Sequence record: NC_006883.2
Strand: one strand, 5' to 3'
DNA length: 64,000 nucleotides
Shown here: piece by piece, positions 33,240-49,988 of the stretch
Numbering within the stretch: the first letter of the stretch is position 1
How the letters are laid out: each line of letters begins with the position of its first letter
Position numbers and translations under genes: made by a program
The notes under the pieces: generated by a model
Database searches by the model: none
What the model saw: only the letters and a program-made list of their open reading frames with translations
Told to the model about the DNA's origin: nothing

Positions 33240-33262
33240 ATAAATACTTAAAAAGTATTTAA

Positions 33263-33940: not shown

Positions 33941-34143
33941 TGAATAATTTGATAGATCAACTCATTATTGAGTTTAAAAAATTGAAAGGAGTTAAAGGTA
34001 ATATATTTGAAAATTTTCTATCTTTTGTGCATTTATGCTTAACAGGTAACAAAGATGATAAATATAAGGTAAAGAAGACTCAAATATTAGAATATATTGT
34101 TGCCAATAGGCAATCAATTAAATCGAAATTAATACAAAACTGA
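33940..34143 (+). CDS. hypothetical protein
   Basis: 67 aa ORF coupled to both neighbours. Confidence 0.55.
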   Translation: MNNLIDQLIIEFKKLKGVKGNIFENFLSFVHLCLTGNKDDKYKVKKTQILEYIVANRQSIKSKLIQN

Positions 34144-35417
34144 TGAAATCTTTTTCGCAATTTTTAACTGAAACTACTGCTACTCAACAAGCTGCTCGTC
34201 TAGGATTAGAGGGTGATGGGCATGGTGGGTGGTATGATAGGTCTACTGGAGAGTTTGTTGCAAAAACCGAAAAGGGAAGATTAAAGTTTTATAATAAGAG
34301 ACAAAAGGTAGGTGCTCAAGATCCAGCACAATCCGAGAAAGAAAAGAATTTATCATCACCTAATACTCAGGCTCCACCTGAAGAACAACAACCAGAACAG
34401 GAAGTAGCACCTGAACAAGAGCAACAACCTTTACCTGTTCAGAGTCCTGATCTTGCTGCTGGACCTCCACCAGTTCCTAAAACTAAAGGAACATTAACAC
34501 TTGCATTTGGTAGATTTAATCCACCACACGCAGGTCATCAACAATTAATGGATATTGCTGCTGCTTCTGCTGAAGAACAGGAGAGTGATTACATTATTGT
34601 TCCTTCTCGTAGTAATGATAAAAAGAAAAATCCATTAGACGCTGATACTAAGATTTCTATGATGAGGCAGATGTTCCCTCAACATAGTGAGAGAATTATT
34701 AATGATACTGGTAATAGAACTATCTTCGATGTTTTAAAGAAAGCTCATAATGATGGGTATGCAAATGTAAGAATAGTTGCTGGTGATGATAGAGTAAAGG
34801 AATTTGATAAACTATCTCAAAATTATAATGGTACTTTATATGATTTTGAAGGATTAGAAGTTATATCTTCTGGGGAAAGAGATCCTGATTCTGATGGTGT
34901 AGAAGGTTTATCTTCATCAAGGATGAGATTGGCGGCAATGGAAGGTGATTTTAAAACTTTCCGTTCTGGTCTTCCTGAAGATGTTCCTAGAAAACAAGCA
35001 ATGACTTTGTTTGATACTGTTCGTCAGGGAATGGGTGTTGATGAAGTTAAAGAGTGTTGGAACATATGGGAAATAGCACCTAAAGATGATCCAGAAAACT
35101 TACGTGAAGCATACATTAAAAAAGAAGTTTTTGATATAGGAACTAAAGTTGAAAATGTAAATACTGGTTTAATTGGTAGAATTATTCGTAGAGGTGCGAA
35201 TCATTTGATCTGTGTAACAGAAGATAATATAATGTTTAAATCGTGGATTAAGGATGTAACCGAAGCAGTAGTAAACGGAACTACTATATCTGGTGTTTCT
35301 TCAGATAATAGACTAGTTGGTACAGATAAACATCTTAAGTATGTTGCCTCTATGGTTCCTGGAGCTACATGGGGAATAAGTTTCATAAATAAATACAAGG
35401 TAAGAAAAAAGTCGTAG
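34143..35417 (+). CDS. cytidyltransferase-like nucleotidyltransferase with N-terminal extension
   Basis: FGRFNPPHAGH (HxGH), VAGDDR, SSSRMR. Confidence 0.85.
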   Translation: MKSFSQFLTETTATQQAARLGLEGDGHGGWYDRSTGEFVAKTEKGRLKFYNKRQKVGAQDPAQSEKEKNLSSPNTQAPPEEQQPEQEVAPEQEQQPLPVQSPDLAAGPPPVPKTKGTLTLAFGRFNPPHAGHQQLMDIAAASAEEQESDYIIVPSRSNDKKKNPLDADTKISMMRQMFPQHSERIINDTGNRTIFDVLKKAHNDGYANVRIVAGDDRVKEFDKLSQNYNGTLYDFEGLEVISSGERDPDSDGVEGLSSSRMRLAAMEGDFKTFRSGLPEDVPRKQAMTLFDTVRQGMGVDEVKECWNIWEIAPKDDPENLREAYIKKEVFDIGTKVENVNTGLIGRIIRRGANHLICVTEDNIMFKSWIKDVTEAVVNGTTISGVSSDNRLVGTDKHLKYVASMVPGATWGISFINKYKVRKKS

Positions 35418-35429
35418 TGAAGTTTTCCA

Positions 35430-36785
35430 ATGAGTAAAAATATCGTTGAAGAATTACCAGCAAGAAAACATGCACCTGCTGCAGCACCTGAGGCTAAGAA
35501 AGAGGGTGGTAAACCAGAGGCAAAGAAAGGTGGTGGTTCTGTAGAGGAAGGTTCTGAGAAGAAAATTCGTCAGGCTGTATATGACATAAGATATCGTGCT
35601 CGGAGAGAAGATATTGATCTGAAGGCTGCTTACGCTCAATATATGTCTAATAGTAGTTTAAGTCAGGCAGAAAGAACTGCTGTTAGAGCTAAGTTATTTG
35701 GTAAAGAAGGTGGTGGTGTGAAGGAGCAAGCAATGCTTAATGTTGATGAGATTGCATCTGATAATCTAGCAAATGCATTATTTAAAGTGTTCGTTGAAAA
35801 AGAAGAAAATAAAGAAATAGAACTTGCATATCTTCAGCAATTAGAAGAGCAAGAAGGTGGTAAGTATAAGATAAGAGTTAAAGATAAGAACGGTAAATCA
35901 TATGTAAGGTATGCTGACCGTGCTAAGATCACACAACTTCGTTCTAATCCAAATATTCAATCGGTTGAAATGACTGATCATGGCGAACCTTATGAAGGTG
36001 AGCGTAAGAAGGGATCCGATACTGCTAAGGCAAAAGGTGGTGGTAAGTTAGATCCTGTTGGTAAGGAAGATGCTGATGTGGATAATGATGGTGATGTTGA
36101 TAAGAGTGATAAGTATTTACTAAAACGTCGTAAGGCAATTGGTAAGGCTATTAAGACAAGAGCAGAAGCATTTATCGCTGATGGAACTATTTCTACCGAA
36201 CCTAAAGGTAAAAAGGTAGGTGAAGGTGCTGTTGACAATTATAAGTCTGGTGCTGTAAAGGTTGCTCCAGAAGATAAGTCTGAAGAGAGTTCTAAGAATG
36301 CTGCTAGAGGTGGCATCTATGCTTCATTCGCACATCAGAGAATGCTTAAGAATCTTGCAGAGAAAAGAGCATTAGAAGAAAAGAAAGCAGAAGAAGTTGA
36401 AGAGTCAACTATTAATACTGCTGACTGTGAAAAGAAACCTGAAGAGAAAGAGAAAGATATGCGTGGAACTTACGCAAAGATCAATCTCATAAGAAACAAA
36501 CTACGTTCTATGGGTCAGAAAGATCCTATAGTTATGCTTTCTGCTCTTGATGGTGATGAGGATGACAACGCTGATAAGGTAAAAGAAGAGAGAACTGCTG
36601 CTGATCCTGGAGCACCTGCCAGAATGGGTAGAGGTGTTCCTACTCCAAAAAAACAAGGACCAAAAACAGAAGAGCAAGCACCAGAAACAACAAAAGGTCA
36701 AGGACCAAAAACAGAAAAACCAAGATATAATCCTTTTAAAGATGGTAGAACACCAACCAGTGCTTCACAAACAACTGGTCCATAA
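35430..36785 (+). CDS. charged hypothetical protein with EF-hand-like loop (probable virion protein)
   Basis: DVDNDGDVDKSD loop; late-type ATAAATA upstream. Confidence 0.65.
   Translation: MSKNIVEELPARKHAPAAAPEAKKEGGKPEAKKGGGSVEEGSEKKIRQAVYDIRYRARREDIDLKAAYAQYMSNSSLSQAERTAVRAKLFGKEGGGVKEQAMLNVDEIASDNLANALFKVFVEKEENKEIELAYLQQLEEQEGGKYKIRVKDKNGKSYVRYADRAKITQLRSNPNIQSVEMTDHGEPYEGERKKGSDTAKAKGGGKLDPVGKEDADVDNDGDVDKSDKYLLKRRKAIGKAIKTRAEAFIADGTISTEPKGKKVGEGAVDNYKSGAVKVAPEDKSEESSKNAARGGIYASFAHQRMLKNLAEKRALEEKKAEEVEESTINTADCEKKPEEKEKDMRGTYAKINLIRNKLRSMGQKDPIVMLSALDGDEDDNADKVKEERTAADPGAPARMGRGVPTPKKQGPKTEEQAPETTKGQGPKTEKPRYNPFKDGRTPTSASQTTGP
36654..36716 (+). repeat. 18 bp direct repeat (QGPKTE twice)
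   Basis: CAAGGACCAAAAACAGAA at 36654 and 36699. Confidence 0.7.
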
Positions 36786-36794
36786 TGTGCTATA

Positions 36795-37037
36795 ATGAGT
36801 GAAGTTATTATTACACCTGATTATGACGGTCTATATGATGACTGGTTCGACCCCCCTATGGAGATTAAAATGAAAATGAATGAAGACATCGTGATTAACA
36901 CGACTGAAGGATTAGAAGTGGTTAATGTCCCACAATCTTTACATGAGATAGCATACGATTTTGCTACAAAAGGTATTACAACCACTATTAATACTACTGG
37001 TGGTTCAGAAGTTTTTAACGTCCCAGATGATGCTTGA
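36795..37037 (+). CDS. hypothetical protein
   Basis: 80 aa ORF. Confidence 0.55.
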   Translation: MSEVIITPDYDGLYDDWFDPPMEIKMKMNEDIVINTTEGLEVVNVPQSLHEIAYDFATKGITTTINTTGGSEVFNVPDDA

Positions 37038-37248
37038 AGAGAATAAATTTTCGGATTTTTATCATAAGGCAAGAAAAAAAGTCTTAGATAAAAAGAAAAA
37101 GAAGGAAGAAAAGAAACCTGAAAAGGCACAAGATGCTGGTGCTAGAGCACGAAGGGTATTAAAACGCAAAGAACACGCTAAGTATGTGTCTGGATCGACA
37201 GAAAACGTTCCAGATGATATACGAGACCATAAAGAATTTTATAAATAA
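37027..37248 (+). CDS. basic hypothetical protein
   Basis: Lys-rich ORF; in-frame ATG at 37027. Confidence 0.55.
   Translation: MMLEENKFSDFYHKARKKVLDKKKKKEEKKPEKAQDAGARARRVLKRKEHAKYVSGSTENVPDDIRDHKEFYK
37240..37247 (+). promoter_or_regulatory. T4-type late promoter
   Basis: TATAAATA 22 nt upstream of the aaRS-like gene. Confidence 0.65.
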
Positions 37249-37269
37249 ATTCAGTTTTGCGAAGAATTA

Positions 37270-38073
37270 ATGACAAGCCTGATTGATCCGAAAAAATATA
37301 CCAAAACACTTGACCTATTAAGGTCATTTTTTTTGTCTAAAGGTTTTTATGAAGTCCATACTCAGAACCGTTTAAGTATCCTTGCTGCATGTGAAGATCC
37401 AGAAACAGTAGCAACCTATAATTATGGTGATAATGTTTGGCCATTACCTCAAACTGGACAGATGTGGTTAGAGTATGAATTACTCAAAAACCCAGAAGCA
37501 GCAGGATTCTTCTGTTTATCTACATCCTATAGAGCAGAACCTAATCCAGTACCAGGTAGGCATGAAACTATCTTCCCTATGTTTGAGTTTGAAATGCACG
37601 GTGGTGTAGAAGAACTTGAAAAGATGGAAGTTGAATTGTGCGAACATCTTGGGATACCCTTAGATCAAGAGAATATCCTTTCTTATGATGATTGGGGTAA
37701 TATGTTTAATGCAAAAGAACTTGAGCATGAACATGAAGAGAAGATTGGTCGTGGTATGATTACTAAGTTCCCTGAGTGGACATCACCATTTTGGAATATG
37801 GCAAGATACGATGATGGTGTAACCAGTAAGAAGATTGATGTTATATTAAATGGTATGGAAACTATTGGTAGTGCAGAACGCAGCACTGATAAGAAACAGA
37901 TGCGTGATACATTCCATACTATTTCTGATGGTGAATATGCTAATTTACTTTACAAATTATTTGGTAAGGAAAGAGTAGAAGCAGAACTTGAAGAGTTTCT
38001 TGACTTTGACTTCTTTCCTAGAAGTGGAGGAGGAATCGGTGTAACACGTATCATGCAAGCAATCCCTGATTAG
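37270..38073 (+). CDS. class II aaRS catalytic-domain protein (AsnRS/AS-AR-like, no anticodon-binding domain)
   Basis: Motif 1 FFLSKGFYEVHT, motif 2 SYRAE..GRHETIFPMFEFE, motif 3 SGGGIGVTR; only 267 aa. Confidence 0.85.
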   Translation: MTSLIDPKKYTKTLDLLRSFFLSKGFYEVHTQNRLSILAACEDPETVATYNYGDNVWPLPQTGQMWLEYELLKNPEAAGFFCLSTSYRAEPNPVPGRHETIFPMFEFEMHGGVEELEKMEVELCEHLGIPLDQENILSYDDWGNMFNAKELEHEHEEKIGRGMITKFPEWTSPFWNMARYDDGVTSKKIDVILNGMETIGSAERSTDKKQMRDTFHTISDGEYANLLYKLFGKERVEAELEEFLDFDFFPRSGGGIGVTRIMQAIPD

Positions 38074-38082
38074 GGATTCCTT

Positions 38083-38168
38083 TGTGAGGTGACGAAATTG
38101 GTAAACGTGTCAGTCTGTTTAACTGATGTTCCTGGCGGGACTTGAAGGTTCGACTCCTTCCCTCACAG
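38083..38168 (+). tRNA. tRNA-Asn(GTT) with long variable arm
   Basis: Acceptor TGTGAGG/CCTCACA plus G73; D loop TGG; anticodon stem TCAGT/ACTGA with loop CTGTTTA; 17 nt variable region; T arm GAAGG-TTCGACT-CCTTC; no encoded CCA. Confidence 0.85.
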
Positions 38169-38203
38169 TTTAGATTACTATATAGTTCAGTTGCGTTTAG
38201 CAA

Positions 38204-38818
38204 ATGACTTGTACAGGAACACTCCCAAAAGAGGTAGTTCTCGAAGCACTTCGGTGTTGTAGGGACGTCTACCCACATGAGCAAGATTATTTGGTTAGTA
38301 GGAAAGTTGCAGGACATACTATTCTTGCAGTAGAAGGTACGAATGAAACTACTGATTGGATTACTAATCTTAAGTTCTTAATTAAGAGGGATGATTGTCA
38401 TAGGGGATTTAAAAATAATGCTAATAGAACATTAGCACAATTAGTAGTTGCCTATGAAGGATTAAATCCAGAAAGAAAACTTGTTATTGCAGGTCATTCA
38501 CTTGGTGGTGCTACTGCCACATTAATAGCAGATCTCCTTTGGGAATCTGGTAATACAAATATTGCACTTATTACTGCTGGTTCTCCGAGACCAGGAGGAA
38601 GAAGATTGAAAAGGAGGATTAAGGATCTTGAACACTACAGGTTTGTACACGGTAATGATATTGTTCCAACGACTCCTCCATGGCTTGCTGGATACGTTCA
38701 TACTCATCCAGTTACTAAACTTGAGGATGCAAACGACACAAGATTTGATGGGGTCGCAGATCATAACATGGGCGACTACTATGACGCAGCAGTAAAACAC
38801 TACGAAAATCACGAGTAA
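38204..38818 (+). CDS. lipase class 3 (alpha/beta hydrolase)
   Basis: VEGT..DW, GFK, GHSLGG nucleophile elbow, DIVP, DH. Confidence 0.88.
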   Translation: MTCTGTLPKEVVLEALRCCRDVYPHEQDYLVSRKVAGHTILAVEGTNETTDWITNLKFLIKRDDCHRGFKNNANRTLAQLVVAYEGLNPERKLVIAGHSLGGATATLIADLLWESGNTNIALITAGSPRPGGRRLKRRIKDLEHYRFVHGNDIVPTTPPWLAGYVHTHPVTKLEDANDTRFDGVADHNMGDYYDAAVKHYENHE

Positions 38819-39030
38819 TGTGGAGTCTTCTTCTACCTCTCGCTAAGAAGGTAATTATAAAGCAGTTGGCAAAACCAACTGTTAAAAAGTTAGTTATTGA
38901 ATTGTTGGAAGCAGTTGTCAGAACTACTGATACTGATCTTGATGATATGATGCTTAAGAGGTTGAAGAAGTCTATTCTCGCCCCTACGGGTAAACCACTC
39001 TCTAAGCAATTGCTTGGGGAACAGAAATAA
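38818..39030 (+). CDS. small amphipathic basic protein
   Basis: Coupled to lipase stop; LLEAVVRTTDTDLDD. Confidence 0.6.
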   Translation: MWSLLLPLAKKVIIKQLAKPTVKKLVIELLEAVVRTTDTDLDDMMLKRLKKSILAPTGKPLSKQLLGEQK

Positions 39031-39031
39031 T

Positions 39032-39039
39032 TATAAATA
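39032..39039 (+). promoter_or_regulatory. T4-type late promoter
   Basis: TATAAATA. Confidence 0.7.
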
Positions 39040-39065
39040 TTGATATAAAGTTTAAGGAAAGTCAA

Positions 39066-39359
39066 ATGTCACTTTGGGGAAAAACTGACACTAGTGGTGA
39101 CGAACCAAAGTTCGGTGCAGCACTTAATTCAGCAACTTCAGCAACAATAGAAGTATTTGGTGTAGATGCCACCGAGCAAGGTGTTGCTACTGCTGCTTCT
39201 GGAGATGCTGGTAAATATGCTCCACAACATGCAGGTTGGGTAGGTATTGCAACTCATATGGATTGCCACGGTAATCTAAGAGTTAAAAATGAAACTCTTG
39301 TAGCAATGGGTTCTATAACTGGAGACCAAGCAGACGACGCAACATTCGCAGATAGTTAA
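39066..39359 (+). CDS. late hypothetical (putative virion) protein
   Basis: MSLWG N-terminus, HAGWVG, ETLVAM; downstream of late promoter with AAGGA SD. Confidence 0.65.
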   Translation: MSLWGKTDTSGDEPKFGAALNSATSATIEVFGVDATEQGVATAASGDAGKYAPQHAGWVGIATHMDCHGNLRVKNETLVAMGSITGDQADDATFADS

Positions 39360-39372
39360 TTAATGGTTTAGT

Positions 39373-39744
39373 ATGAAATTTGATGAATTGAATGAGAGCA
39401 ATTATATGCTCTTCGCTATAAAATTCTATGATAATCCACAAGCAGTTACAAAGGACGACTTTGAATCTGACTTGAAAAGGATTCGTTATATAAAACGACT
39501 GCTGAAAAGGTATAAGAATACTGGTGAGTTAAAGATTCATCTTATATTAAATCATATTACTATATTGTTTAATGTCTTTAATGAAGCAGCAGTCCCTTTG
39601 TTATTTTATAATTTGGAAGAAGAACTTTGGCCTTGCATCAAAAGTTTTCTAGTATTTTTAAATAGGATACCAGAATACCCAAGAACAAAGATTAATGATA
39701 TAGAAGTAGATGATGATTGTCTTAAGCAATTAAATACAGTTTAA
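39373..39744 (+). CDS. conserved T4-like hypothetical protein
   Basis: YDNPQ..F..DLKR..YIKRL..Y..GELK.HLILNH. Confidence 0.75.
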   Translation: MKFDELNESNYMLFAIKFYDNPQAVTKDDFESDLKRIRYIKRLLKRYKNTGELKIHLILNHITILFNVFNEAAVPLLFYNLEEELWPCIKSFLVFLNRIPEYPRTKINDIEVDDDCLKQLNTV

Positions 39745-40046
39745 TGGACATCAATAAAGCCATTGAAATTATTAGAGAATCTAAGAGGAAGTCTAAATGT
39801 CCTCCAGGTTCTAAGTGGGATAAGAAATTAAAATCATGTGTTCCAAAAAAATACTCTGGTAGAGTATATGTTGGATGGGGAAGAAATCGTGACGAAAAGG
39901 ATGAAGGTGATGATGATTCTAAGAAGAATGGTAAAAACGGGTCTAATGGGAATGGGCATAATAATGGTGGCTCTGGGAACGGTAATGGTGGTAACGGCAA
40001 CGGTGGAAATGGTAACGGGGGTGGAAACGGAGGTGGTGGAGAGTGA
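39744..40046 (+). CDS. Gly/Asn-rich hypothetical protein
   Basis: CPPG..WDKKLKSC motif then (GNG)n tail. Confidence 0.6.
   Translation: MDINKAIEIIRESKRKSKCPPGSKWDKKLKSCVPKKYSGRVYVGWGRNRDEKDEGDDDSKKNGKNGSNGNGHNNGGSGNGNGGNGNGGNGNGGGNGGGGE
39945..40040 (+). repeat. GGN/AAY low-complexity coding repeat
   Basis: Tandem Gly/Asn codons encoding GNGNGG. Confidence 0.6.
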
Positions 40047-40690
40047 AAACTTTTAAACAATTCCAAGAAGCTGCTTTAGCGATACCTGCTGCTGGTTTTA
40101 TAAGTAAATTTCTCCCTGCTGCTGCAGCAACTATCGGTGCTGCTGGAACAATAATGCAGATTAAAGATAGAGCAGGTGGTAATAGGAAAAAAATTAAGGG
40201 TAGAATTGGAGGACAATCACCTGAAGTTAAACAAAACCATATGACTCCTAGACAAAGGAGAACAATGGAAGCACAGGGATTAATACCAAAACAAGATCCT
40301 CTTAAAAATAATCAAGGACCAGGATTAAAACCTGGATCGGGTACAAAACCTGGTGGAAAGTGGGATAAATTACCAAAAGGACAGAGTTCAAATTGGAGTA
40401 AGGGTAATAATCTTACGGGCATTGCTAATGAAGTGCAGAAGAATCAGAATAAAATTAAGTTAAAAGATTTTATTAAGAAAAAATATGGTAATAAGGATCA
40501 ATTAACAGGTGGAACATTACCAGAAGAAATGATGGGTGCAGGAGCAATAGCCAATAACGTTGGTGATGGTAAGATTGCTGGCACAGTAGAAGCAGGAGAC
40601 GATCCTCCAGTAAAGAAGAAGAAAAAAAGTAAGAAGAAAAAGAGATATGTTTACGGTGGAAAAGGATCTCGTAAAATGTGGTTGACCTAG
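40043..40690 (+). CDS. putative internal head protein (CTS-like N-terminus)
   Basis: MKTFKQFQE; GTG start. Confidence 0.6.
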   Translation: MKTFKQFQEAALAIPAAGFISKFLPAAAATIGAAGTIMQIKDRAGGNRKKIKGRIGGQSPEVKQNHMTPRQRRTMEAQGLIPKQDPLKNNQGPGLKPGSGTKPGGKWDKLPKGQSSNWSKGNNLTGIANEVQKNQNKIKLKDFIKKKYGNKDQLTGGTLPEEMMGAGAIANNVGDGKIAGTVEAGDDPPVKKKKKSKKKKRYVYGGKGSRKMWLT

Positions 40691-40749
40691 ATTTACTAGT
40701 TTGTATATAATGATACATTAGAATAAATATTACGGTATATCTACCTATA

Positions 40750-41124
40750 ATGGAGAATAATAGTCCCCTGATACAAAGATTAGAAAGAGTTATTGATACT
40801 CTACAGGACAACTCCGTGAAGATGGGGCAGATGCTTGCCGTCCACGATGAGAAGTTAGACAAACAGGATAGGATCGATGCCGTATTATTCGAGAAAGTGG
40901 AATCGCTTCATAGGGAACTTAACCGTTCGACTCAGGAGATTAAGAAGGGATGTGAGAGAGATATTCGCAAGGTAGATGATAGACTCCGCATTATGGAAAA
41001 GAAGATGTGGAGTATGTTTGGTGCGATAGGTATAATAACTTTTATAGTAAGTCCAATTGGAATGAGAGTTATGGGTAATGTCTTGACTACAGCAACAACA
41101 CCGAGTATAATACAAAAACGATAA
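40750..41124 (+). CDS. coiled-coil protein with C-terminal TM segment
   Basis: Heptad region followed by WSMFGAIGIITFIV. Confidence 0.65.
   Translation: MENNSPLIQRLERVIDTLQDNSVKMGQMLAVHDEKLDKQDRIDAVLFEKVESLHRELNRSTQEIKKGCERDIRKVDDRLRIMEKKMWSMFGAIGIITFIVSPIGMRVMGNVLTTATTPSIIQKR
41083..41111 (+). promoter_or_regulatory. sigma70-type promoter for primase
   Basis: TTGACT-N17-TATAAT. Confidence 0.7.
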
Positions 41125-41136
41125 TAATTTTTTATA

Positions 41137-42108
41137 ATGGATTTGACTGATACCAAGTATATTGGACTGGTATCATCTCGCTTGCCAAAATTTAAAAAGG
41201 TTAAACCTGATCTTTATAACTTTCGTTGTCCTCTCTGTGGGGATTCCCAGAAGCAAAAGAATAAGGCGAGAGGGTATATCTATGCTAAGAAGGCAGATGC
41301 TAACTACAAGTGCCATAACTGTGGTGCATCTACAACTTTTAGTAACTTTTTAAAGATCTTAGATTCTACTCTTTATAAGCAATATATTTTTGAAAAATTC
41401 CAAACCAGAAATACTGGAAAGGGATCTATATTTGAGGAACCAAAGTTAGAATTTAAGAAACCAGTATTTAGAAAAAAGTTAGATCTTCCAAAAGCATCAG
41501 AGGTTAAGATTGCTAAACAATATCTGGAGAATAGAAAATTAGATCCTACTAAATTCTATTACACGGATAAGTTTAAAGAATGGACAAATACTCAAAAACA
41601 GACCTTCGATTACATAGGGAAAGATGAACCCCGTATAATCATACCGATGTATGATACCGAACAGAAGATGATCGGGTTTCAGGGAAGAAGTCTAATTCCA
41701 AACTCGGTTAAATATATTACCATCATGATTGATGAAGAAGCACCGAAGATCTATGGACTCGACAAAATTAATAAAGAAAAACCCATTTACATCATTGAAG
41801 GACCTTTCGACTCGTCCTTGGTTGAAAACAGTATTGCTATGTGTGGGGCCGATGTTGATATTGGGTCGCTTGGTTGGAGCGATTATATTTGGGTTTATGA
41901 TAATGAACCTCGGAGCAGAGAAATCACAGACAGAATCCGTAAAACCCTTGATAGAGGAGATAAGGTAGTTATTTGGCCAACAAGTATAGAGGAGAAAGAT
42001 GTTAATGACATGATACTCGGTGGACACGATGTAATGGGTGTGTTAAAATCAAATACATACTCAGGATTAAAAGCAAAGATTAAATTTAACAACTGGAAAA
42101 AAATATGA
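41137..42108 (+). CDS. gp61: DNA primase gp61
   Basis: CPLCGDS...CHNCG zinc finger, EGPFDS, DNEPR TOPRIM. Confidence 0.95.
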   Translation: MDLTDTKYIGLVSSRLPKFKKVKPDLYNFRCPLCGDSQKQKNKARGYIYAKKADANYKCHNCGASTTFSNFLKILDSTLYKQYIFEKFQTRNTGKGSIFEEPKLEFKKPVFRKKLDLPKASEVKIAKQYLENRKLDPTKFYYTDKFKEWTNTQKQTFDYIGKDEPRIIIPMYDTEQKMIGFQGRSLIPNSVKYITIMIDEEAPKIYGLDKINKEKPIYIIEGPFDSSLVENSIAMCGADVDIGSLGWSDYIWVYDNEPRSREITDRIRKTLDRGDKVVIWPTSIEEKDVNDMILGGHDVMGVLKSNTYSGLKAKIKFNNWKKI

Positions 42109-44432
42109 GTAACGGTACAACTGTTAAGAAGAGAAATGGAAGAGGTGTAGAACCTCTTAATCTTGAAAAGATTCATGTAATGTGTGAGGAAGCATGTGAG
42201 GGGTTAGCAGGAGTATCTGCTTCTCAAGTGGAGATACAATCAGGAATACAATTCTATGACGGAATCACGACAGCAGAAATACAAGAAATACTCATTCGCA
42301 GTGCTTCTGATCTTATTGACCTTGATCATCCTAACTACCAGTTCGTTGCTGCTAGGCTTCTTTTATTTTCTTTGAGAAAGCAGTTGTTTGGTAGATTGCG
42401 TGAGTGTCCAACTGTAATAGATCACGTTCAAAAATGTGTGAAGAAAGGTATATACGATGCAGAAATTCTTGACTTGTATTCTGAAGAAGAGTATAATAGA
42501 TTACAATCATTTATAGATCACAGTCGTGACTTTCTTTTTACTTATGCTGGACTACGCCAAGTAGTTGATAAGTATTTGGTACAGGATAGAAGCACTGGAG
42601 AGGTGTATGAAACACCACAGTTCATGTATCTTATGATCGCTGCGACTATATTCTCAAAGTATCCAAAAGAAACGAGGTTAGACTATGTCAGAAAGTACTA
42701 CGACGCAATCAGCAGACACCGCATCAACATCCCAACGCCCATTATGGCAGGTGTCAGAACACCCATACGTCAATTTGCATCTTGTGTTCTGGTTGATATT
42801 GACGATACCCTCGATAGTATCTTTAGCTCTGATATGGCTATTGGGAAATACGTTGCACAGAGGGCTGGTATCGGTATTAACGCTGGAAGAATCCGAGGAA
42901 TCAACGCTAAAATCAGAGGTGGAGAGGTTCAGCACACAGGTGTTGTACCCTTCCTTAAAAAATTTGAGTCAACTGTCAGATGTTGCACACAAAACGGTAT
43001 TAGAGGCGGCTCCGCAACTGTCCACTTTCCTATCTGGCATCAAGAGATCAGCGACATCTTGGTACTCAAAAACAACAAAGGAACAGAAGACAACCGTGTC
43101 AGAAAACTCGACTACTCCATCCAATTAAGTAAATTATTTTATGAGCGATTTATCCAAAACCTACCTATTACTTTATTCAGTCCTCATGATGTGCCTGGGC
43201 TGTATGACGCTTTTGGTAGCGATACCTTTGACGAACTCTATACTCAATACGAATCAGACGAGTCTATCCCCAGAACCACAATCGGTGCTCAAGAGTTAAT
43301 TCTTGACCTATTGAAAGAAAGAGCAGAAACTGGTAGAATATACTTGATGAACATAGATCATTGTAATTCTCACTCATCCTTCTTGGATAAAGTTGAGATG
43401 AGCAATCTATGTCAAGAGATTACTCTACCAACCAAACCTATACAACACATTGACGATGAAACTGGAGAAATTGCTCTCTGTATCCTTTCTGCTATTAATA
43501 TTGGCAAAATTAGGGATGTTTCGGATCTTGAAGGTCTTTGTGATCTTAGCATTCGGTCTCTTGATGAACTCATTGATTTTCAAGGATACCCCGTCAGAGC
43601 AGCAGAGATCGCTACAAAGGCAAGAAGATCCTTGGGAGTTGGTTTTATTGGACTCGCACACTACCTTGCCAAGCAAGGGGTTAAGTACGAAGATCCAGAG
43701 GCATGGAAACTAGTTCACGATCTTACTGAGGTATTTCAATATAATTTGATTAAGTCATCAGTTAATCTTGCTAAAGAGAAAGGTGCTTGCACCTATTCTG
43801 ATAGGACTAAGTACTCTCAAGGTATTCTTCCTATTGATACGTATAAGCAAGATGTAGATGAATTAGTTCCTAATAATCTTAGTTGTGATTGGGAATCACT
43901 TAGAGAGGATGTAAAACAATATGGTATTCGTAATAGTACTCTGTCTGCTCAAATGCCCTCAGAGTCTTCTTCTGTTGTATGTAATGCCACTAATGGTATT
44001 GAACCACCTAGAGGATATCTCTCTATTAAGAAATCAAAGAAAGGACCACTCAAACAGATAGTTCCTTCTTATAATACTCTTAAGAATAACTATACTCTTC
44101 TTTGGGATATGCCAAACAATACTGGTTATATTAATATCGTTGCAGTAATGCAGAAATTCTTTGATCAGGCGATCTCTGGTAACTGGTCTTATAACCCACA
44201 ACACTTTGATGAGGGAGAAGTTCCTACAAGTGTTATGGCACAAGATCTTTTAACTACATATAAGTACGGTTGGAAGACTTCTTATTATCAGAATACTTAT
44301 GATGTTAAAACTGATGAGATTGATCTATCAGTTTCTAATCCTAATGATGTTGGCATTCAGGGGTCAACTAGATTGGAAAACTTAATATCTGAATTAGAAA
44401 ACCAAGAAGAGTGTGAATCCTGTGCAATTTAG
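42105..44432 (+). CDS. nrdA: class Ia ribonucleotide reductase alpha subunit
   Basis: ATP cone KRNG, PTPIM, SCVL, SNLCQEI, ECESC. Confidence 0.97.
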   Translation: MSNGTTVKKRNGRGVEPLNLEKIHVMCEEACEGLAGVSASQVEIQSGIQFYDGITTAEIQEILIRSASDLIDLDHPNYQFVAARLLLFSLRKQLFGRLRECPTVIDHVQKCVKKGIYDAEILDLYSEEEYNRLQSFIDHSRDFLFTYAGLRQVVDKYLVQDRSTGEVYETPQFMYLMIAATIFSKYPKETRLDYVRKYYDAISRHRINIPTPIMAGVRTPIRQFASCVLVDIDDTLDSIFSSDMAIGKYVAQRAGIGINAGRIRGINAKIRGGEVQHTGVVPFLKKFESTVRCCTQNGIRGGSATVHFPIWHQEISDILVLKNNKGTEDNRVRKLDYSIQLSKLFYERFIQNLPITLFSPHDVPGLYDAFGSDTFDELYTQYESDESIPRTTIGAQELILDLLKERAETGRIYLMNIDHCNSHSSFLDKVEMSNLCQEITLPTKPIQHIDDETGEIALCILSAINIGKIRDVSDLEGLCDLSIRSLDELIDFQGYPVRAAEIATKARRSLGVGFIGLAHYLAKQGVKYEDPEAWKLVHDLTEVFQYNLIKSSVNLAKEKGACTYSDRTKYSQGILPIDTYKQDVDELVPNNLSCDWESLREDVKQYGIRNSTLSAQMPSESSSVVCNATNGIEPPRGYLSIKKSKKGPLKQIVPSYNTLKNNYTLLWDMPNNTGYINIVAVMQKFFDQAISGNWSYNPQHFDEGEVPTSVMAQDLLTTYKYGWKTSYYQNTYDVKTDEIDLSVSNPNDVGIQGSTRLENLISELENQEECESCAI

Positions 44433-45609
44433 AAAATCAACAGAAAGAAAGTCAATGGCAGAAGTTAAAGGAATGACTGTCTTCAATACTGAAGAAGTTA
44501 ATACTAAAAAACAACCGATGTTTTTTGGCAAACCTTTAGGAGTTCAGAGATATGATAATTTTAAATATCCTTCTTTTGAGAATCTAACAAAGCAGCAGTT
44601 AGGATATTTTTGGAGACCAGAAGAAGTATCGTTACAGAAAGATCGTGGAGACTATCAGACGCTTCGTCCAGAACAAAAGCACATCTATACGAGCAATCTT
44701 AAATACCAGATCATGCTCGATAGTGTACAAGGTCGTGCTCCTGGTATGGCTTTCTTACCTTACTGTTCTCTACCTGAGTTAGAAGCATGTATGGAAGTAT
44801 GGTCTTTTATGGAGATGATCCATAGCAGATCATATACCTATGTGATTAAGAATGTATATGCAGATCCATCTGAAGTATTTGATAAGATTCTTAGTGATGA
44901 TAGAATTTTAAGTCGTGCTGCTAGTGTTACTGAGTCCTATGATGACTTTATTAATGAGGCACAAGGATGGGGGCAAAGTAATTTGTGGAGAGATATGGAT
45001 AAGTCCTTGGACACATCCTTACCTGTTTTAGAAATGAAAGAGGTTAAACGTAAACTTTATAGAGCAGTAACTAATGTCAACATCTTGGAGGGTATTCGTT
45101 TTTACGTATCTTTTGCTTGCTCTTTCGCTTTCGGTGAGCTCAAAGTCATGGAGGGATCAGCAAAGATTATATCCCTCATTGCACGAGATGAGAATCAACA
45201 CCTTGCAATCACCCAAAACATTTTAAATAATTGGAGAAAGGGTGATGATCCAGAAATGGTTGAGATAATGAAAGAAGAAGAGCAATGGACATACCAGATG
45301 TTTGAGAAGTGTGTGAATGAAGAGAAGATGTGGGCAGAGTATCTATTTAAAGATGGTTCCATGATCGGTTTGAATGATAAGTTATTACATCAATATGTTG
45401 AATGGGTAGCAAATCGTAGAATGAGATCTATTGGAATGAAACCTGTATATGATATTGCTGCTAAGAACAATCCATTACCTTGGACAGAGCATTGGATTAG
45501 TTCTAAAGGATTGCAAGTAGCACCACAAGAAACAGAAGTAGAATCTTATATTGTAGGAGGAATTAAGCAAGATGTTAAAAAAGACACCTTCGCAGGATTT
45601 AAACTCTGA
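44413..45609 (+). CDS. nrdB: class Ia ribonucleotide reductase beta subunit
   Basis: FWRPEEV, EMIHSRSY, LEGIRFY, DENQH, PQETE. Confidence 0.97.
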   Translation: MNPVQFRKSTERKSMAEVKGMTVFNTEEVNTKKQPMFFGKPLGVQRYDNFKYPSFENLTKQQLGYFWRPEEVSLQKDRGDYQTLRPEQKHIYTSNLKYQIMLDSVQGRAPGMAFLPYCSLPELEACMEVWSFMEMIHSRSYTYVIKNVYADPSEVFDKILSDDRILSRAASVTESYDDFINEAQGWGQSNLWRDMDKSLDTSLPVLEMKEVKRKLYRAVTNVNILEGIRFYVSFACSFAFGELKVMEGSAKIISLIARDENQHLAITQNILNNWRKGDDPEMVEIMKEEEQWTYQMFEKCVNEEKMWAEYLFKDGSMIGLNDKLLHQYVEWVANRRMRSIGMKPVYDIAAKNNPLPWTEHWISSKGLQVAPQETEVESYIVGGIKQDVKKDTFAGFKL

Positions 45610-45709
45610 TGAAGAGTTTAGAAGGATTTGGATGGAGATGGATCGTTTAGAACCTCTTACACCAACTCCTATTTGGCATCCTGATAATTATAAGAAAGAA
45701 GATAGATAA
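45572..45709 (+). CDS. small hypothetical protein (45 aa, overlaps nrdB end)
   Basis: MLKKTPSQDLNSDEEFRRIWMEMDRLEP... Confidence 0.4.
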   Translation: MLKKTPSQDLNSDEEFRRIWMEMDRLEPLTPTPIWHPDNYKKEDR

Positions 45710-45736
45710 ATATTAAAATATAGTGTCTGGATTCAG

Positions 45737-47458
45737 ATGAAATCTTTAAGTCAGTTTATAATAGAGACTCAATCTGGTAGTAATAAACCTAGTACTGATC
45801 CTTGGTTTCCAGATGAAGACAAGAATGGGAAGAATAAAAAATCTACTAATGGTAAGAAGAAATCAATTAAGAATACTCAGAAGAATCTGGAGCAAAATAC
45901 AAAACCAGGAAATAAGAGTAATAAGGGTATAGATCCTAAAGAAGTAAATAAAAGATTATCAGCATCTACAACAAAAGGCGATCAAGCAAGAAGTCAATAT
46001 AATACTTCTGGTATACAAGGTGATAGTAATGTTGGAGATCCAACTCAGAGTAAGTCTAATACACCGAAGAAAACCCCAACACCAAAACCTAAACCTCTAA
46101 CTGGTGCTGAAAGAAATATTTTACAGAAAACTAATCGCCAAAGTGGTGGAAAAATTTCTGTCAATTTTGCTGAACCAATAGATAATAGATCCCAGATGAG
46201 ATCTATTGAAGGTGATCCACAGTCTAATAAGATAAAAGCTGAAGTAGAAAAATCTGTTAATCAAAAAACTAGAGAATTTACTCAGAAGAAAGGAGTAACT
46301 TCAGGTAATGAATTTAAGTATAGTGGTGGTAAAAAACCCTATACTAAAGGAGCAGATAAATTATTAGATAAAATATTTAATGTTAAGAAAGGAGAGAAAA
46401 AACCAGTTAATCCAAAAACAGGTTCTAGGATACCTGATCTTAAAAAGGGTGAACTTGGTAAGTTATATCAAACATCTACTAAAGCGGATCCAAAAAGAGG
46501 AGGTAGTGTAAGAACTACTGATAAAATAAATCAAGAATTAACAGCAAAAAGAGCAGCACGTATAAACCCCAAAACAGGTAAGGCAACAAGGAAAGGTGTT
46601 GAGAATTTTGCTATAAACCAACAAACTAAAGGTTTGAGCACTAAAGGTGATGCTGGAAAGCAAGCCATGGCAAATGCTAAGAAAATTGCTGGTAATGCTC
46701 GTAGTGCTGCATATAAGGATATTGCAAATAAGATTAATACTAGTGATTATGCTGGTAAGAGAGCAAAATTAGCAAGTACTAAAGAACTTGATAGGATTGT
46801 AAATGATATAAAAACCTCAAAAACTATTAGTAGGTCTGTTGATGTTGGTACAACAACTAAAGCACCAACTGTTCTTAGGAAACCACTTTCATCATATAAG
46901 ACTTCACTTAATACTGCAACGAGAAAAGTAAAAATTACGCCCCTTACTAAAACATCAGGAATTAAATATAAACCTTCTGAGACTCCGAAGACAGGTAATA
47001 AAACATTTTCACAGTTTAGAAATGTTAGTGGTCAAAAATCTAATCTTGCAAAATTAAAGATTAAACCTGGTAGATTATTAGGAAAGGGATTTGCTGCATG
47101 GAATGCGATTGATAATTATAAAGCAGCAAAAGGTAGTCCACTTAGGAAACTTGCTAAATCTGCGGTTACAACTGCAGCATATTACAAGGGTGGTACTGCT
47201 GGTGCTTCTTTAGGAACTGGTTTTGGTGCTATAACTGGACCTGGTGCAGTAGTAACTGGAACTGCTGGATTTATTGCTGGTTCTGAAACAGCATCAAATC
47301 TTACAAGTAGAGCATTTGATAAAGTTTGGAAACCACCTACCACTAAAACTAAGGATAAGGATAAGAATAAGAAGATAATTGGTGGTACTACTAGTGGTGG
47401 TATGAAACCTTTTAAATGGAAGAGTGGTATTGCAATTGAAAGTGGTCCAAAGAAATAA
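45737..47458 (+). CDS. large Lys-rich putative internal/ejected virion protein
   Basis: MKSLSQFIIE N-terminus; very basic; C-terminal glycine-zipper-like segment; ATAAATA upstream. Confidence 0.6.
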   Translation: MKSLSQFIIETQSGSNKPSTDPWFPDEDKNGKNKKSTNGKKKSIKNTQKNLEQNTKPGNKSNKGIDPKEVNKRLSASTTKGDQARSQYNTSGIQGDSNVGDPTQSKSNTPKKTPTPKPKPLTGAERNILQKTNRQSGGKISVNFAEPIDNRSQMRSIEGDPQSNKIKAEVEKSVNQKTREFTQKKGVTSGNEFKYSGGKKPYTKGADKLLDKIFNVKKGEKKPVNPKTGSRIPDLKKGELGKLYQTSTKADPKRGGSVRTTDKINQELTAKRAARINPKTGKATRKGVENFAINQQTKGLSTKGDAGKQAMANAKKIAGNARSAAYKDIANKINTSDYAGKRAKLASTKELDRIVNDIKTSKTISRSVDVGTTTKAPTVLRKPLSSYKTSLNTATRKVKITPLTKTSGIKYKPSETPKTGNKTFSQFRNVSGQKSNLAKLKIKPGRLLGKGFAAWNAIDNYKAAKGSPLRKLAKSAVTTAAYYKGGTAGASLGTGFGAITGPGAVVTGTAGFIAGSETASNLTSRAFDKVWKPPTTKTKDKDKNKKIIGGTTSGGMKPFKWKSGIAIESGPKK

Positions 47459-47460
47459 AA

Positions 47461-47468
47461 TATAAATA
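47461..47468 (+). promoter_or_regulatory. T4-type late promoter
   Basis: TATAAATA. Confidence 0.7.
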
Positions 47469-47492
47469 TTACTGATAGTAGTATTTGTAGAA

Positions 47493-48905
47493 ATGTCTTA
47501 CAAGAAATTTGAAGATATACAATATCTTTATGAGAATATAGATGGGCAAGATAGTGATATAGAGGATCTTTCTAATCTTATAATAGAGAAATTAATATCT
47601 GAAGGGTATTCTGATAATGCCATCAATTCCTTTATGGAAACTGCTGATGAATTTGCATTACAAGAAAAAATAATGCAGTTGGATGAAAAAGATTTAAGTA
47701 AAATTCAAAAAGGTTTACAGTTATTAAGAAAGTTTGGCAGAGCTGCATATACTAGACTTAGAAGAAATACTCCTGTAAATGTTAGAAAAAATATAAATCG
47801 AAAAGGGACTCAAGTAAAGGATGGTGTAAATAAGACAAAAGATAAGTTTGTTGATACTGTAAAAAATAATCCAAAGACGTCTTCTGCTGTTGCCATCTCA
47901 GGATTAACTGCATCAGCAATAGCTAGTAAGGAAAATAATAAAAATAAAACTGACGATACTGAAACTAAATCTGGAACATTTAAAGATTCACAAGGTAAGG
48001 AGTTTCCAACTACAGACACTATTCGTGGTACAAAACCAGATCCTAATGCAGGTAGATTAACATATTCAACATCTAAAGGACAGGGAAATCAAACAGTAGC
48101 TACTAATCCTAATAGGCAAGGTGGTGAAAAAGCTAAGGAAATACTTGATAAGAAATCTTCTGATGCTAAGATTGATAAGGAAGTAGATAAGTATGTTGCT
48201 GATAGAAAAGTACCGATTAATAAAGATTTAACTATTGATAAATCGGAAGAAGGAAAGGCAAAATACGCAGAGAAGGCAGCAGAAAGAACAGCAAAAGAAA
48301 CTGAGAAAGATATAAAGGTGGATCCACCTAAACCAGTTAAAATGCATTCTCTTGAAAAGAAAAATAGAGCAAGATTTGGTGATGATGCAATTGATAAATT
48401 AAAGGCAAAGCAAGTTGACTTTAAGAAGATGCAGAGTAAGGATATGAGTAAGGATGACTTCATTAAGAAGTATCCAAAATCTATTACCGCACAGAAAGCA
48501 GCAGGTCTAAGAGATCATTATGATCCTTTTGATATCGTTCTAGGATATCTTGTAGAATCAGAACAAGTTGATTCTATGGATGAAGCACTATACATTATGA
48601 TGGAAATGGATGCTACAACCATTCAAGGTATTGTAAGAGACTTTGAAATGCTTACTGAAGAAGAAGCAGATCGTATGAAAGATGAACGCCTTGAGAAATA
48701 TGGTATAGGACATGATGGATCAGATAGAAAGGCTGGTTCAGGTGGTAGATCCGATTCTAAAAAACCAAAAGGAAAAACCAATCTTCAGAAAGAAACTGAG
48801 AAAAAGCACGGGAAGGGTAAATCTCCACTTGACGTTGCAAAGGCAAACATTATAGCCAAATATGGTAAAGGTGCTATTGCTCCATCTAAGAAGAAAAAGA
48901 AGTGA
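47493..48905 (+). CDS. putative internal virion protein
   Basis: Downstream of late promoter; alternating acidic and basic blocks; several (I/L)xE sites. Confidence 0.55.
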   Translation: MSYKKFEDIQYLYENIDGQDSDIEDLSNLIIEKLISEGYSDNAINSFMETADEFALQEKIMQLDEKDLSKIQKGLQLLRKFGRAAYTRLRRNTPVNVRKNINRKGTQVKDGVNKTKDKFVDTVKNNPKTSSAVAISGLTASAIASKENNKNKTDDTETKSGTFKDSQGKEFPTTDTIRGTKPDPNAGRLTYSTSKGQGNQTVATNPNRQGGEKAKEILDKKSSDAKIDKEVDKYVADRKVPINKDLTIDKSEEGKAKYAEKAAERTAKETEKDIKVDPPKPVKMHSLEKKNRARFGDDAIDKLKAKQVDFKKMQSKDMSKDDFIKKYPKSITAQKAAGLRDHYDPFDIVLGYLVESEQVDSMDEALYIMMEMDATTIQGIVRDFEMLTEEEADRMKDERLEKYGIGHDGSDRKAGSGGRSDSKKPKGKTNLQKETEKKHGKGKSPLDVAKANIIAKYGKGAIAPSKKKKK

Positions 48906-49654
48906 AGACTTATCAACAATTTAATGAGAGCATTGGTAAAGCTCTAGTGAAACTAGGAAGTGTTGGGTTGCGTAAACTTCCCAAGTATCTTCCTAAGTTT
49001 AAGTCCACAATAAAGAATTTATCTAAACCTAAGTTTGAGAAAACTTTATTAAAGAAAATTGGTAGTGGAAGTGAGCAAACAAGAGAGACTGCAAAGAATC
49101 TCCTAGCAAAATCTCAAGTATCTAATCCAAAGAATAGTGGATTTACTTCAACTGTAAAACCTTTAGGTAGTAGTACTGCTAGTAGAGTTGATACTGCAAC
49201 AAAGGATCTTCAATTCCAAGGCAATCTTAAAGGTGCTGAATATAAACCTAGACTAGGTGGTAAGGGTGATAAAGGTCCTTTGGGTCCTGTTATTGGTAGT
49301 AGAGGAAAAGGTAATAAAGCATTAAGAAGATCTGGACAATCAGATAAGATAACTGATTATGAAGGAACTGGTAGGAAACCAACTCCCATGTTTAGGAAAA
49401 CTGAAAAGGAGATGGGTACTTTATATCAAAAACACGAAGTAACTTTAGATCCTAGCAATCCAAAACCTGAACCACATAAGTGGAAGGCAGGTGATATTTA
49501 TATGCAATCCGTTAATATCAAACAGAGTAAAGCACATTCTCGTGCTATAAGAAATCAATTAAAAGATCGGCAAAGGAAATTGTCAAACGTAAAAAATAAG
49601 ACACCCAAATCAGAGATTGAGAGGATGAGAAAAAGACTAGAGTCTGGTAACTGA
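48902..49654 (+). CDS. putative internal head protein (CTS-like N-terminus)
   Basis: MKTYQQFNE; basic. Confidence 0.6.
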   Translation: MKTYQQFNESIGKALVKLGSVGLRKLPKYLPKFKSTIKNLSKPKFEKTLLKKIGSGSEQTRETAKNLLAKSQVSNPKNSGFTSTVKPLGSSTASRVDTATKDLQFQGNLKGAEYKPRLGGKGDKGPLGPVIGSRGKGNKALRRSGQSDKITDYEGTGRKPTPMFRKTEKEMGTLYQKHEVTLDPSNPKPEPHKWKAGDIYMQSVNIKQSKAHSRAIRNQLKDRQRKLSNVKNKTPKSEIERMRKRLESGN

Positions 49655-49984: not shown

Positions 49985-49988
49985 GTTA

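Follow-up and report, generated by a model that had tools for sequence, protein, structure and literature searches.

The DNA analysed here, hereafter the window, is a stretch of 64,000 nucleotides from record NC_006883.2, in which four open reading frames (ORFs) begin with a leader of about ten residues resembling the capsid-targeting sequence (CTS) of the internal proteins of bacteriophage T4. Positions 34000-50000 of the window are 100% identical to Prochlorococcus phage P-SSM2 (AY939844.2 / NC_006883.2), a 252-kb T4-like cyanomyovirus of the family Kyanoviridae. Translation of the window gave the four ORFs, PSSM2_194, PSSM2_205, PSSM2_211 and PSSM2_213, with the positions, plus-strand orientation and N-termini reported in an earlier reading of the same DNA (the original prediction; Table 1). 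That reading had called them otherwise unrelated, and this was borne out by BLASTP of the protein bodies (residues 13 to the end, the first 12 having been removed), in which no pair was similar and every E value exceeded 0.5. A genome-wide motif scan, proposed with the original prediction, added two members outside the window: PSSM2_115, which begins MKSFKQFLEE, and its upstream neighbour PSSM2_114, which begins MRTFQEFLQLCE. Both sit within the structural module, immediately before gp13, and bring the leader-bearing proteins of the P-SSM2 genome to six. The GTG starts of PSSM2_205 and PSSM2_213 each overlap the upstream stop codon, as GTGA; the former overlaps the stop of PSSM2_204 and the latter is translationally coupled to PSSM2_212, while PSSM2_194 and PSSM2_193 overlap by one base.

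Table 1 Leader-bearing ORFs, promoter elements and neighbouring genes. Positions are those of the window (position 1 is record position 124001) unless marked as record positions. The slash marks the predicted cut; aa, amino acids; nt, nucleotides.
Feature	Position	Strand	Description	Annotation or context
PSSM2_194	34143-35417	+	424 aa, ATG, MKSFSQFLTE	'cytitidyltransferase', T4-GC190
Leader of PSSM2_194	34143..34172	+	10 codons	putative gp21 cut after Glu10, FLTE/T
PSSM2_205	40043-40690	+	215 aa, GTG, MKTFKQFQE	hypothetical protein
PSSM2_211	45737-47458	+	573 aa, ATG, MKSLSQFIIE	hypothetical protein
PSSM2_213	48902-49654	+	250 aa, GTG, MKTYQQFNE	hypothetical protein
PSSM2_115 and PSSM2_114	record positions 99763-100529			outside the window; found by genome-wide scan
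ATAAATA, late-promoter-like	33240..33246	+	23 nt before ATG of PSSM2_192	heads overlapping PSSM2_192-193-194
TATAAATA, T4 late-promoter consensus	39032..39039	+	upstream of PSSM2_202	heads overlapping PSSM2_202-203-204-205
ATAAATA, late-promoter-like	45706..45712	+	31 nt before ATG of PSSM2_211	
TATAAATA	47461..47468	+	32 nt before PSSM2_212	heads PSSM2_212-213
PSSM2_195	35430..36785	+	451 aa, no leader	directly downstream of PSSM2_194
PSSM2_212	47493..48905	+	470 aa, no canonical leader	translationally coupled to PSSM2_213

The leader is concentrated at the starts of genes. In the six frames of the window the pattern K[ST][FYLMIW]x[QE]F has five matches, and four of these fall at the four ORF starts; in the whole 252-kb genome, assembled from the public record, five of 10 six-frame matches fall at annotated starts. 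From P-SSM2's own amino-acid frequencies 0.003 matches would be expected at its 335 ORF starts (Poisson P about 1e-15). We extended the count to 80 IMG/VR loci that code for relatives of PSSM2_194 (61-100% identity). Here 96 of the 99 six-frame matches to K[ST][FYLW]xxFx(1,2)E lay at start codons of ORFs encoding 40 amino acids or more, and 28 of these ORFs, coding for 45-745 amino acids, were not cytidylyltransferases. A scan of IMG/VR DNA for MKTFKQF retrieved at least 120 stretches, against a single one for the permuted control MFKQTKF. Among the matches listed, 111/125 lay at ORF starts (an in-frame stop no more than 20 codons upstream) and 114/125 had Glu at position 9 or 10, and the isoelectric point (pI) was above 9 in 96/117 of the proteins. 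The leader is a widespread N-terminal label.

Some of the sequences retrieved in these scans are described here in their own right (L numbers are our handles for individual sequences). On the minus strand of one viral contig of 27% G+C (L160:4800-7900), four ORFs of 119-275 amino acids lie within about 2.4 kb, each beginning MKTFKQFI.E, an arrangement that resembles an internal-protein gene array; two ORFs of this type are present on each of L159 and L188. A conserved 51-residue protein beginning MKTFKQF[QRK]E[EDS]W[ST][ND]KYK was found in about 30 of 120 marine viral stretches among the matches listed (for example at L129:1785, and on the minus strand of L133) and is absent from P-SSM2.

Conservation of the leader follows the protein. 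Among 79 orthologues of PSSM2_194 the first ten residues read M-K-[ST]-F-x-x-F-[LI]-x-E, with M1, F4 and F7 invariant, K2, [ST]3, [LI]8 and E10 nearly so, and positions 5, 6 and 9 free. The constrained positions coincide with the functional residues of the leader of T4 internal protein III (IPIII), in which mutagenesis has linked residues 4 and 7 to targeting and residues 8 and 10 to processing (PMC9026906). At the conserved residues of the PSSM2_194 leader the codons vary synonymously (TCN/AGY for Ser, TTT/TTC, GAA/GAG and TTA/TTG/CTA), indicating that selection acts on the protein and not on the DNA. Nucleotide identity among the six P-SSM2 paralogues is 0.60 within the leader, 0.28 upstream of it and 0.31 downstream; these flanks are at background identity and, together with the synonymous variation, they exclude that the similarity stems from a repeated DNA element, a promoter cassette or a translation element.

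The same pattern, a leader retained in front of a changing body, is seen in the families of the other window members. Four relatives of PSSM2_211 keep MKS[LF]S[QK]F..E, with complete divergence setting in at the following residue. Sixteen relatives of PSSM2_213 keep MKT[YF]xQFNES while the adjacent sequence diverges; their start is mostly ATG, and the presence of ATG at that codon supports the GTG start of PSSM2_213. Relatives of PSSM2_205 start MKTF[NAK][QE]FQEA. On two contigs (L097:5800-6030 and L098:220-450) the relative of PSSM2_213 has TTA at the leader start, giving LKTYNQFNES; the frame is open for about 65 codons upstream, with an ATG four codons before the motif, and the leader may there be extended or internal, as in a fusion.

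All four units that hold the leader ORFs of the window have NTAAATA in front. In P-SSM2 the same element lies 22-41 nucleotides before the ATG of gp3, gp8, gp18, gp20, gp25, gp26, the small ORF before gp21 and other known late genes, and it was found upstream of none of 19 early or middle (replication or metabolic) genes. The phage encodes both gp55 and gp33. At the level of sequence, the association of the leader genes with late promoters is supported. The original prediction had placed the ORFs in clusters with late-type promoters; the promoter-like motifs stand, one at the head of every unit, whereas the ORFs form separate units, interleaved with gp61, nrdA and nrdB, rather than a single cluster.

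Leader-bearing proteins were also sought in the published virion proteomes of related cyanophages. Mass spectrometry of purified S-SM1 virions detected 41 proteins, including the putative citidylyltransferase T4-GC190 with 25 peptide counts, exceeding the portal protein (Sullivan et al. 2010). In the assembled S-SM1 genome the N-terminus of this protein reads MKKFSAFLNE. Five further S-SM1 virion proteins (T4-GC 1453, 1454, 1455, 425 and 426) are products of genes that surround its own, in the interval from mazG to gp61, a region syntenic with 33-41 kb of the window, and one virion protein encoded there, SSM1_192, starts MLSFKELQE. The strict leader motif gave no match on S-SM1; both variants were recognised by reading the N-termini directly and, because they had escaped the strict motif, positions 3 and 6 were relaxed in the pattern. 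In the assembled S-CREM2 genome the relaxed pattern matched only five true ORF starts, those of the S-adenosylmethionine (SAM) hydrolase gp6, gp13, the kinase gp14, gp136 and the cytidylyltransferase gp154. Each of these appears in the published S-CREM2 table of 52 virion proteins (219 coding sequences; hypergeometric p = 6.5e-4), whose authors wrote of 'non-structural' proteins that 'may be encapsulated' and did not offer a mechanism. The authors of the S-SCSM1 study described NMNAT-like proteins as recurrent in cyanophage virion proteomes; the S-SCSM1 orthologue, ORF91, was likewise found in virions by mass spectrometry, according to these authors. These data support the physical presence of the leader-bearing class in the virions of related cyanophages. 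A further virion-detected protein of S-CREM2, the HNH ('Cas9-like') nuclease gp12 (L234:4705-7314, minus strand), is without the leader at residue 1 and has RFASFMAE/A at residues 18-25; either its annotated start is too far upstream or it has a longer leader.

The head genes annotated in P-SSM2 include gp20, gp21 (PSSM2_133), gp22 (PSSM2_134) and gp23, and its gp21 is 43% identical to the prohead protease gp21 of T4 over 148 residues (E 1e-33). T4 gp23 loses a propeptide of 65 residues (PMC5694885). Its maturation site, GSFLTE/AEIGG in the T4 record, aligns with NFLSE/AP in P-SSM2, QILTE/TL in S-SM1 and GLLTE/AP in S-CREM2. The leaders end in FLTE/T (PSSM2_194), FIIE/T (PSSM2_211), FLEE/A (PSSM2_115), FQE/A (PSSM2_205) and FNE/S (PSSM2_213), and so resemble the gp23 site (FLTE/A in T4, FLSE/A in P-SSM2). 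Because of this resemblance to a conserved site, and of the gp21 homology, cleavage by gp21 after the leader Glu is plausible. In the basic members the leader end is the sole [LIVFM]xE[ASTGN] site in the protein, at residue 9 in PSSM2_205 and residue 10 in PSSM2_211. The idea that PSSM2_211 is a cleavable polyprotein found no support, its only cleavage-type site being the one at residue 10. A complex prediction for residues 1-40 of PSSM2_194 with a gp21 relative (90% identical to P-SSM2 gp21) scored 0.00, which speaks neither for nor against the cleavage.

Behind the leader the cargo is of two kinds. PSSM2_194 is acidic. After its leader come a small conserved beta domain (about residues 11-50) and a P/E/Q linker of low complexity, then the HIGH-motif nucleotidyltransferase domain (about residues 115-300) and, at the C-terminus, a beta-rich domain. 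The protein matches Pfam PF01467 CTP_transf_like over residues 120-236 (E 2e-11) and phrog_395 cytidyltransferase (E 5e-101), and the segment GRFNPPHAGH is invariant in 36 orthologues. In a structure model the enzyme domain reached a predicted local distance difference test score (pLDDT) of 80-93, and Foldseek placed it nearest to NadD/NMNAT, then to PPAT and FAD synthetase (E about 1e-5, probability 1.00, 15-19% identity). PSSM2_194 is accordingly predicted to be a member of the HIGH-motif nucleotidyltransferase superfamily (the branch of NadD/NMNAT, PPAT and FAD synthetase), having its Rossmann-like alpha/beta fold and (H/T)xGH motif, and to be NadD/NMNAT-like in fold. Searches against the NCBIfam NadD/NadR/NMNAT equivalogs scored 27 bits at best, against cut-offs of 112-341, and 'NMNAT-like' is therefore used here of the fold only. 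The family is present in 561 phage records, mostly of cyanomyoviruses. Such proteins had been expected to be annotated as hypothetical, which does not hold for PSSM2_194: it is annotated as a cytidylyltransferase and its association with virions has already been published. Residues 318-378 match phrog_4808, labelled 'ribonucleotide reductase alpha subunit', and tblastn with the cytidylyltransferase gave matches that extend, in several cyanophages, into an annotated nrdA or nrdB, which points to a small beta-rich module that the cytidylyltransferase and nrdA/nrdB genes share or that has been fused between them.

PSSM2_205, PSSM2_211 and PSSM2_213, each with a pI of about 10.4, are basic and predicted to be largely disordered. 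In PSSM2_205 a hydrophobic Ala/Gly-rich stretch (about residues 10-38) directly follows the predicted cut and precedes a basic, low-complexity body; the protein shows no similarity to SSM1_197, which occupies the syntenic position in S-SM1. PSSM2_211 is predicted to be mostly disordered (pLDDT 0.43 in the Atlas model) and carries a Gly-rich hydrophobic patch at its C-terminus. Searches of Pfam, NCBIfam, PHROGs and the protein atlas returned no family or function for any of the three.

Taken together, we put at roughly three in four the probability that the leader ORFs of P-SSM2 encode T4-type, capsid-targeted internal proteins of a cyanomyovirus, and within this reading the targeting to the capsid is well supported. 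Each leader gene would be transcribed late, from a gp55-type promoter, and its product would begin with a leader of about ten residues, M-K-[ST]-aromatic/Leu-x-[QE]-F-x(1,2)-E. By analogy with T4, this leader would bind the gp22 scaffolding core, so that the protein is built into the prohead; the prohead protease gp21 would then cut off the leader behind Glu9 or Glu10, and the mature protein would stay inside the DNA-filled head. The cargo so delivered to the capsid would comprise one conserved NadD/NMNAT-like nucleotidyltransferase, a core gene product of cyanomyoviruses, and a set of very basic, largely disordered proteins that vary from phage to phage.

Several observations weigh against this reading or limit its reach. 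Four public transcriptomic runs cover the region as flat-depth contigs and show neither transcript ends nor timing, and the supplements of PMC7238727 give orthology only. T4-GC190 was not detected in the older virion proteomes of Syn9 and S-PM2, though Syn9 gp184 has the leader MKKFSAFLSE; this is probably a limit of sensitivity, both data sets being shallow (5 counts for Syn9 gp20). Presence in the virion, which the packaging proposed in the original prediction requires, is documented for leader proteins of S-SM1 and S-CREM2 and for the PSSM2_194 orthologue of S-SCSM1; these data come from related phages rather than from P-SSM2 itself and, of the four ORFs in the window, cover the family of PSSM2_194. 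As to processing, PSSM2_205 and PSSM2_213 have F-x-E at residues 7-9, compared with [LI]-x-E at residues 8-10 in T4 IPII and IPIII, the first Glu-Gly of PSSM2_114 comes only at residue 12, and none of the cyanophage leaders is known in cleaved form. That the proteins enter the host together with the DNA, and act there as effectors, is proposed by analogy with T4.

One alternative accepts that the leader targets the prohead and differs in the fate of the cargo. The basic proteins PSSM2_205, PSSM2_211, PSSM2_213, PSSM2_114 and PSSM2_115 would be parts of the core or scaffold, comparable to T4 gp67 and gp68, or fillers that neutralise the charge of the DNA; they would be degraded or kept for structure only, and would not be delivered as effectors with a target in the host. 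Their predicted disorder and the lack of any domain or fold match agree with such a role, as does the position of PSSM2_114 and PSSM2_115 within the structural gene module. The T4 core proteins gp67, gp68 and gp22 are likewise processed by gp21 (PMC5694885), and lysines of T4 internal proteins touch DNA phosphates (PMC3012670). We nevertheless consider this explanation unlikely. With a single cleavage-type site per basic protein, at the leader end, degradation to small peptides is not predicted; the bodies turn over fast between phages while the leader is kept, which is the pattern of the T4 anti-restriction internal proteins (PMC12373910); and S-CREM2 has the same leader on enzymes, which are not fillers. 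It is more improbable again that the leader marks virion proteins bound for the tail, baseplate or neck, or serves as a tag for a chaperone or for assembly that has nothing to do with the gp22 core and gp21. Published proteomes give presence in particles, not location, and S-CREM2 gp136 adjoins the genes for the small terminase subunit and the neck. However, a near-identical T4 sequence has been shown by experiment to carry foreign proteins into the head (PMC9026906), the motif at the end of the leader is that of the gp23 maturation site, and the leader is on none of the tail and baseplate N-termini inspected in the three genomes.

Very little credence is left for a shared N-terminus that is a feature of the nucleic acid, either an enhancer of translation initiation or a recombination linker that modular shuffling has left behind. 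In AT-rich phage genomes it is common for the second codon to be AAA and for the 5' ends of coding sequences to be A/T-rich, and T4-type phages are known for mobile regulatory cassettes and for shuffling at short shared sequences (PMC2839356). Against this stand the freedom of synonymous codons at conserved residues, the background identity of the flanks and the lack of a common upstream context, two of the starts being GTG codons inside the upstream ORF and the others ATG codons after an intergenic promoter; moreover, the motif predicts incorporation into the virion in S-CREM2. Chance resemblance among a few AT-rich ORF starts could be entertained for so short a motif, but the counts refute it (the Poisson estimate, the 96/99 matches at start codons and the excess of MKTFKQF over its permuted control), and its probability is negligible.

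Some neighbouring genes bear on the composition of the cargo. PSSM2_195 shares a 35-residue LDPVG..DVDNDGD module with SSM1_191 of S-SM1 (77% identity over 35 residues, E 2e-4), and SSM1_191 is a virion protein detected by mass spectrometry (Table S8, T4-GC1454); PSSM2_195 is a possible co-packaged partner. The element LDPVG.ED.D[VI]DNDGD is common to PSSM2_195, SSM1_191 (L011:2421-3839) and Syn9 gp185 (L233:4935-6524); it resembles a calcium-binding or dockerin-type loop and is found at residue 207 in PSSM2_195 and at residue 28 in SSM1_191. PSSM2_114 (L004:1763-2272) matches residues 420-587 of phrog_26015, a profile of 587 residues, and the C-terminus of PSSM2_212 matches its residues 81-163. 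In other phages the two modules seem to belong to a single longer protein.

Two further features of the region concern the units that carry the leader genes. PSSM2_203 (T4-GC198, a cyanophage core protein; window 39373-39744) starts MKFDELNES, which is leader-like and one residue shorter; the resemblance may be coincidence, since the orthologues encoded by S-SM1 and S-CREM2 are missing from the proteins detected in the virions of these phages. The AY939844.2 feature table lists a tRNA-Asn at record positions 164094-164179 (window 40094-40179), within PSSM2_205. We rejected the overlap that this implies: ARAGORN puts the tRNA-Asn at 38082-38169, GU071092.1 places it correctly, and AY939844.2 seems to carry outdated coordinates, shifted by about 2 kb.

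T4-like cyanophages are among the most abundant marine viruses and most of their genes are labelled 'hypothetical'. A ten-residue leader that predicts capsid-internal proteins gives several of these their first functional label. It also offers a mechanism for the recurrence in cyanophage virion proteomes of enzymes such as the cytidylyltransferase/NMNAT-like protein, the SAM hydrolase and the kinase, and it picks out candidates for early-acting, possibly anti-defence, proteins in the infection of Prochlorococcus and Synechococcus. No literature linking a CTS leader to cyanophages was found in open-access full text, and earlier mention in subscription papers is possible; in a 2010 review of T4-like cyanophages the words 'internal' and 'prohead' are absent. 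The set had originally been described as cyanophage-specific, which is true of the cargo bodies and not of the leader, which is T4's own. The advance is that a mechanism known from T4 is extended to another virus family and to new cargo, and it suggests that loading through CTS, gp22 and gp21 has survived the deep divergence of Straboviridae and Kyanoviridae.

More tentatively, and with well under even confidence, the short T4-type leader may be a general address label, readable from sequence, by which marine T4-like phages mark a large, rapidly evolving set of capsid proteins, among them enzymes, that are delivered together with the DNA and act at the onset of infection. Examples of such cargo would be the core NadD/NMNAT-like nucleotidyltransferase and the SAM hydrolase, kinase and HNH nuclease of other cyanophages. 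If this were so, the delivered proteins might restore or alter nucleotide cofactors, or disarm the defences of Prochlorococcus and Synechococcus, and the injected protein set of the ocean's most abundant myoviruses would become predictable from sequence alone.

The closest known system is that of T4 itself. Its CTS is textbook knowledge, and in T-even phages the leader has long served to identify ip genes (PMC9026906, PMC3012670, PMC12373910). The T4 record (NC_000866) confirms the leaders quoted with the original prediction: ipII and ipIII start MKTYQEFIAE, and ipI starts MKTFKEF, followed by a longer propeptide. PSSM2_213 and PSSM2_205 agree with these T4 leaders at six of the first seven residues. 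As in T4, the P-SSM2 leader is about ten residues long, with the consensus M-K-T-[FY]-x-[QE]-F, hydrophobic or aromatic residues at positions 4 and 7 and a Glu at the cut site. The bodies behind it are, again as in T4, mutually unrelated and mostly basic, four of the six P-SSM2 leader proteins having the pI of about 10 seen in T4 internal proteins. Late-promoter-like motifs of the TATAAATA type stand before the units that hold the genes, in keeping with the T4 ip genes, and the genes in the window lie outside the main head module, with gp21, gp22 and gp23, its cleavage motif conserved, encoded in the same genome.

The two systems also differ. T4 belongs to the Straboviridae and infects Escherichia coli, whereas P-SSM2 is one of the Kyanoviridae with Prochlorococcus as host. 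Position 6 of the P-SSM2 leaders is Gln rather than Glu, and in two members the predicted cut follows position 9, F-x-E replacing I-x-E. The T4 internal proteins have 76-193 residues; the P-SSM2 cargo has 215-573 and shares no sequence with any of them. P-SSM2 DNA is not known to contain glucosyl-hydroxymethylcytosine, and restriction enzymes of the GmrSD type, the targets in T4, are therefore unlikely targets here. Packaging, cleavage and injection are properties of the T4 proteins and are proposed for those of P-SSM2.

For the enzymes the best analogy is another T4 protein. T4 Alt is an ADP-ribosyltransferase that is packaged in the head at low copy number, trimmed by gp21 and injected. PSSM2_194 and the SAM hydrolase and kinase of S-CREM2 are, like Alt, enzymes and not small basic proteins; unlike Alt, PSSM2_194 is a HIGH-motif nucleotidyltransferase with a leader of the internal-protein type, so that fold and chemistry differ. 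Within the cyanophages, PSSM2_194 belongs to the same family as T4-GC190 of S-SM1, ORF91 of S-SCSM1 and ORF154 of S-CREM2, a family that is core to 16 cyanomyoviruses (Sullivan et al. 2010). The S-SM1, S-SCSM1 and S-CREM2 papers report its presence in particles and speculate on delivery; the portions of them available here mention neither an N-terminal targeting leader nor processing by gp21.

A more distant parallel is found in giant phages. In phiKZ and SPN3US the ejection proteins carry propeptides of 80-130 residues with an A/S-x-E motif. These phages and P-SSM2 would have in common a cargo internal to the head and, as predicted for P-SSM2, processing after Glu by a protease like T4 gp21. 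In contrast to the long giant-phage propeptides, the leader of P-SSM2 is short and of the T4 type.

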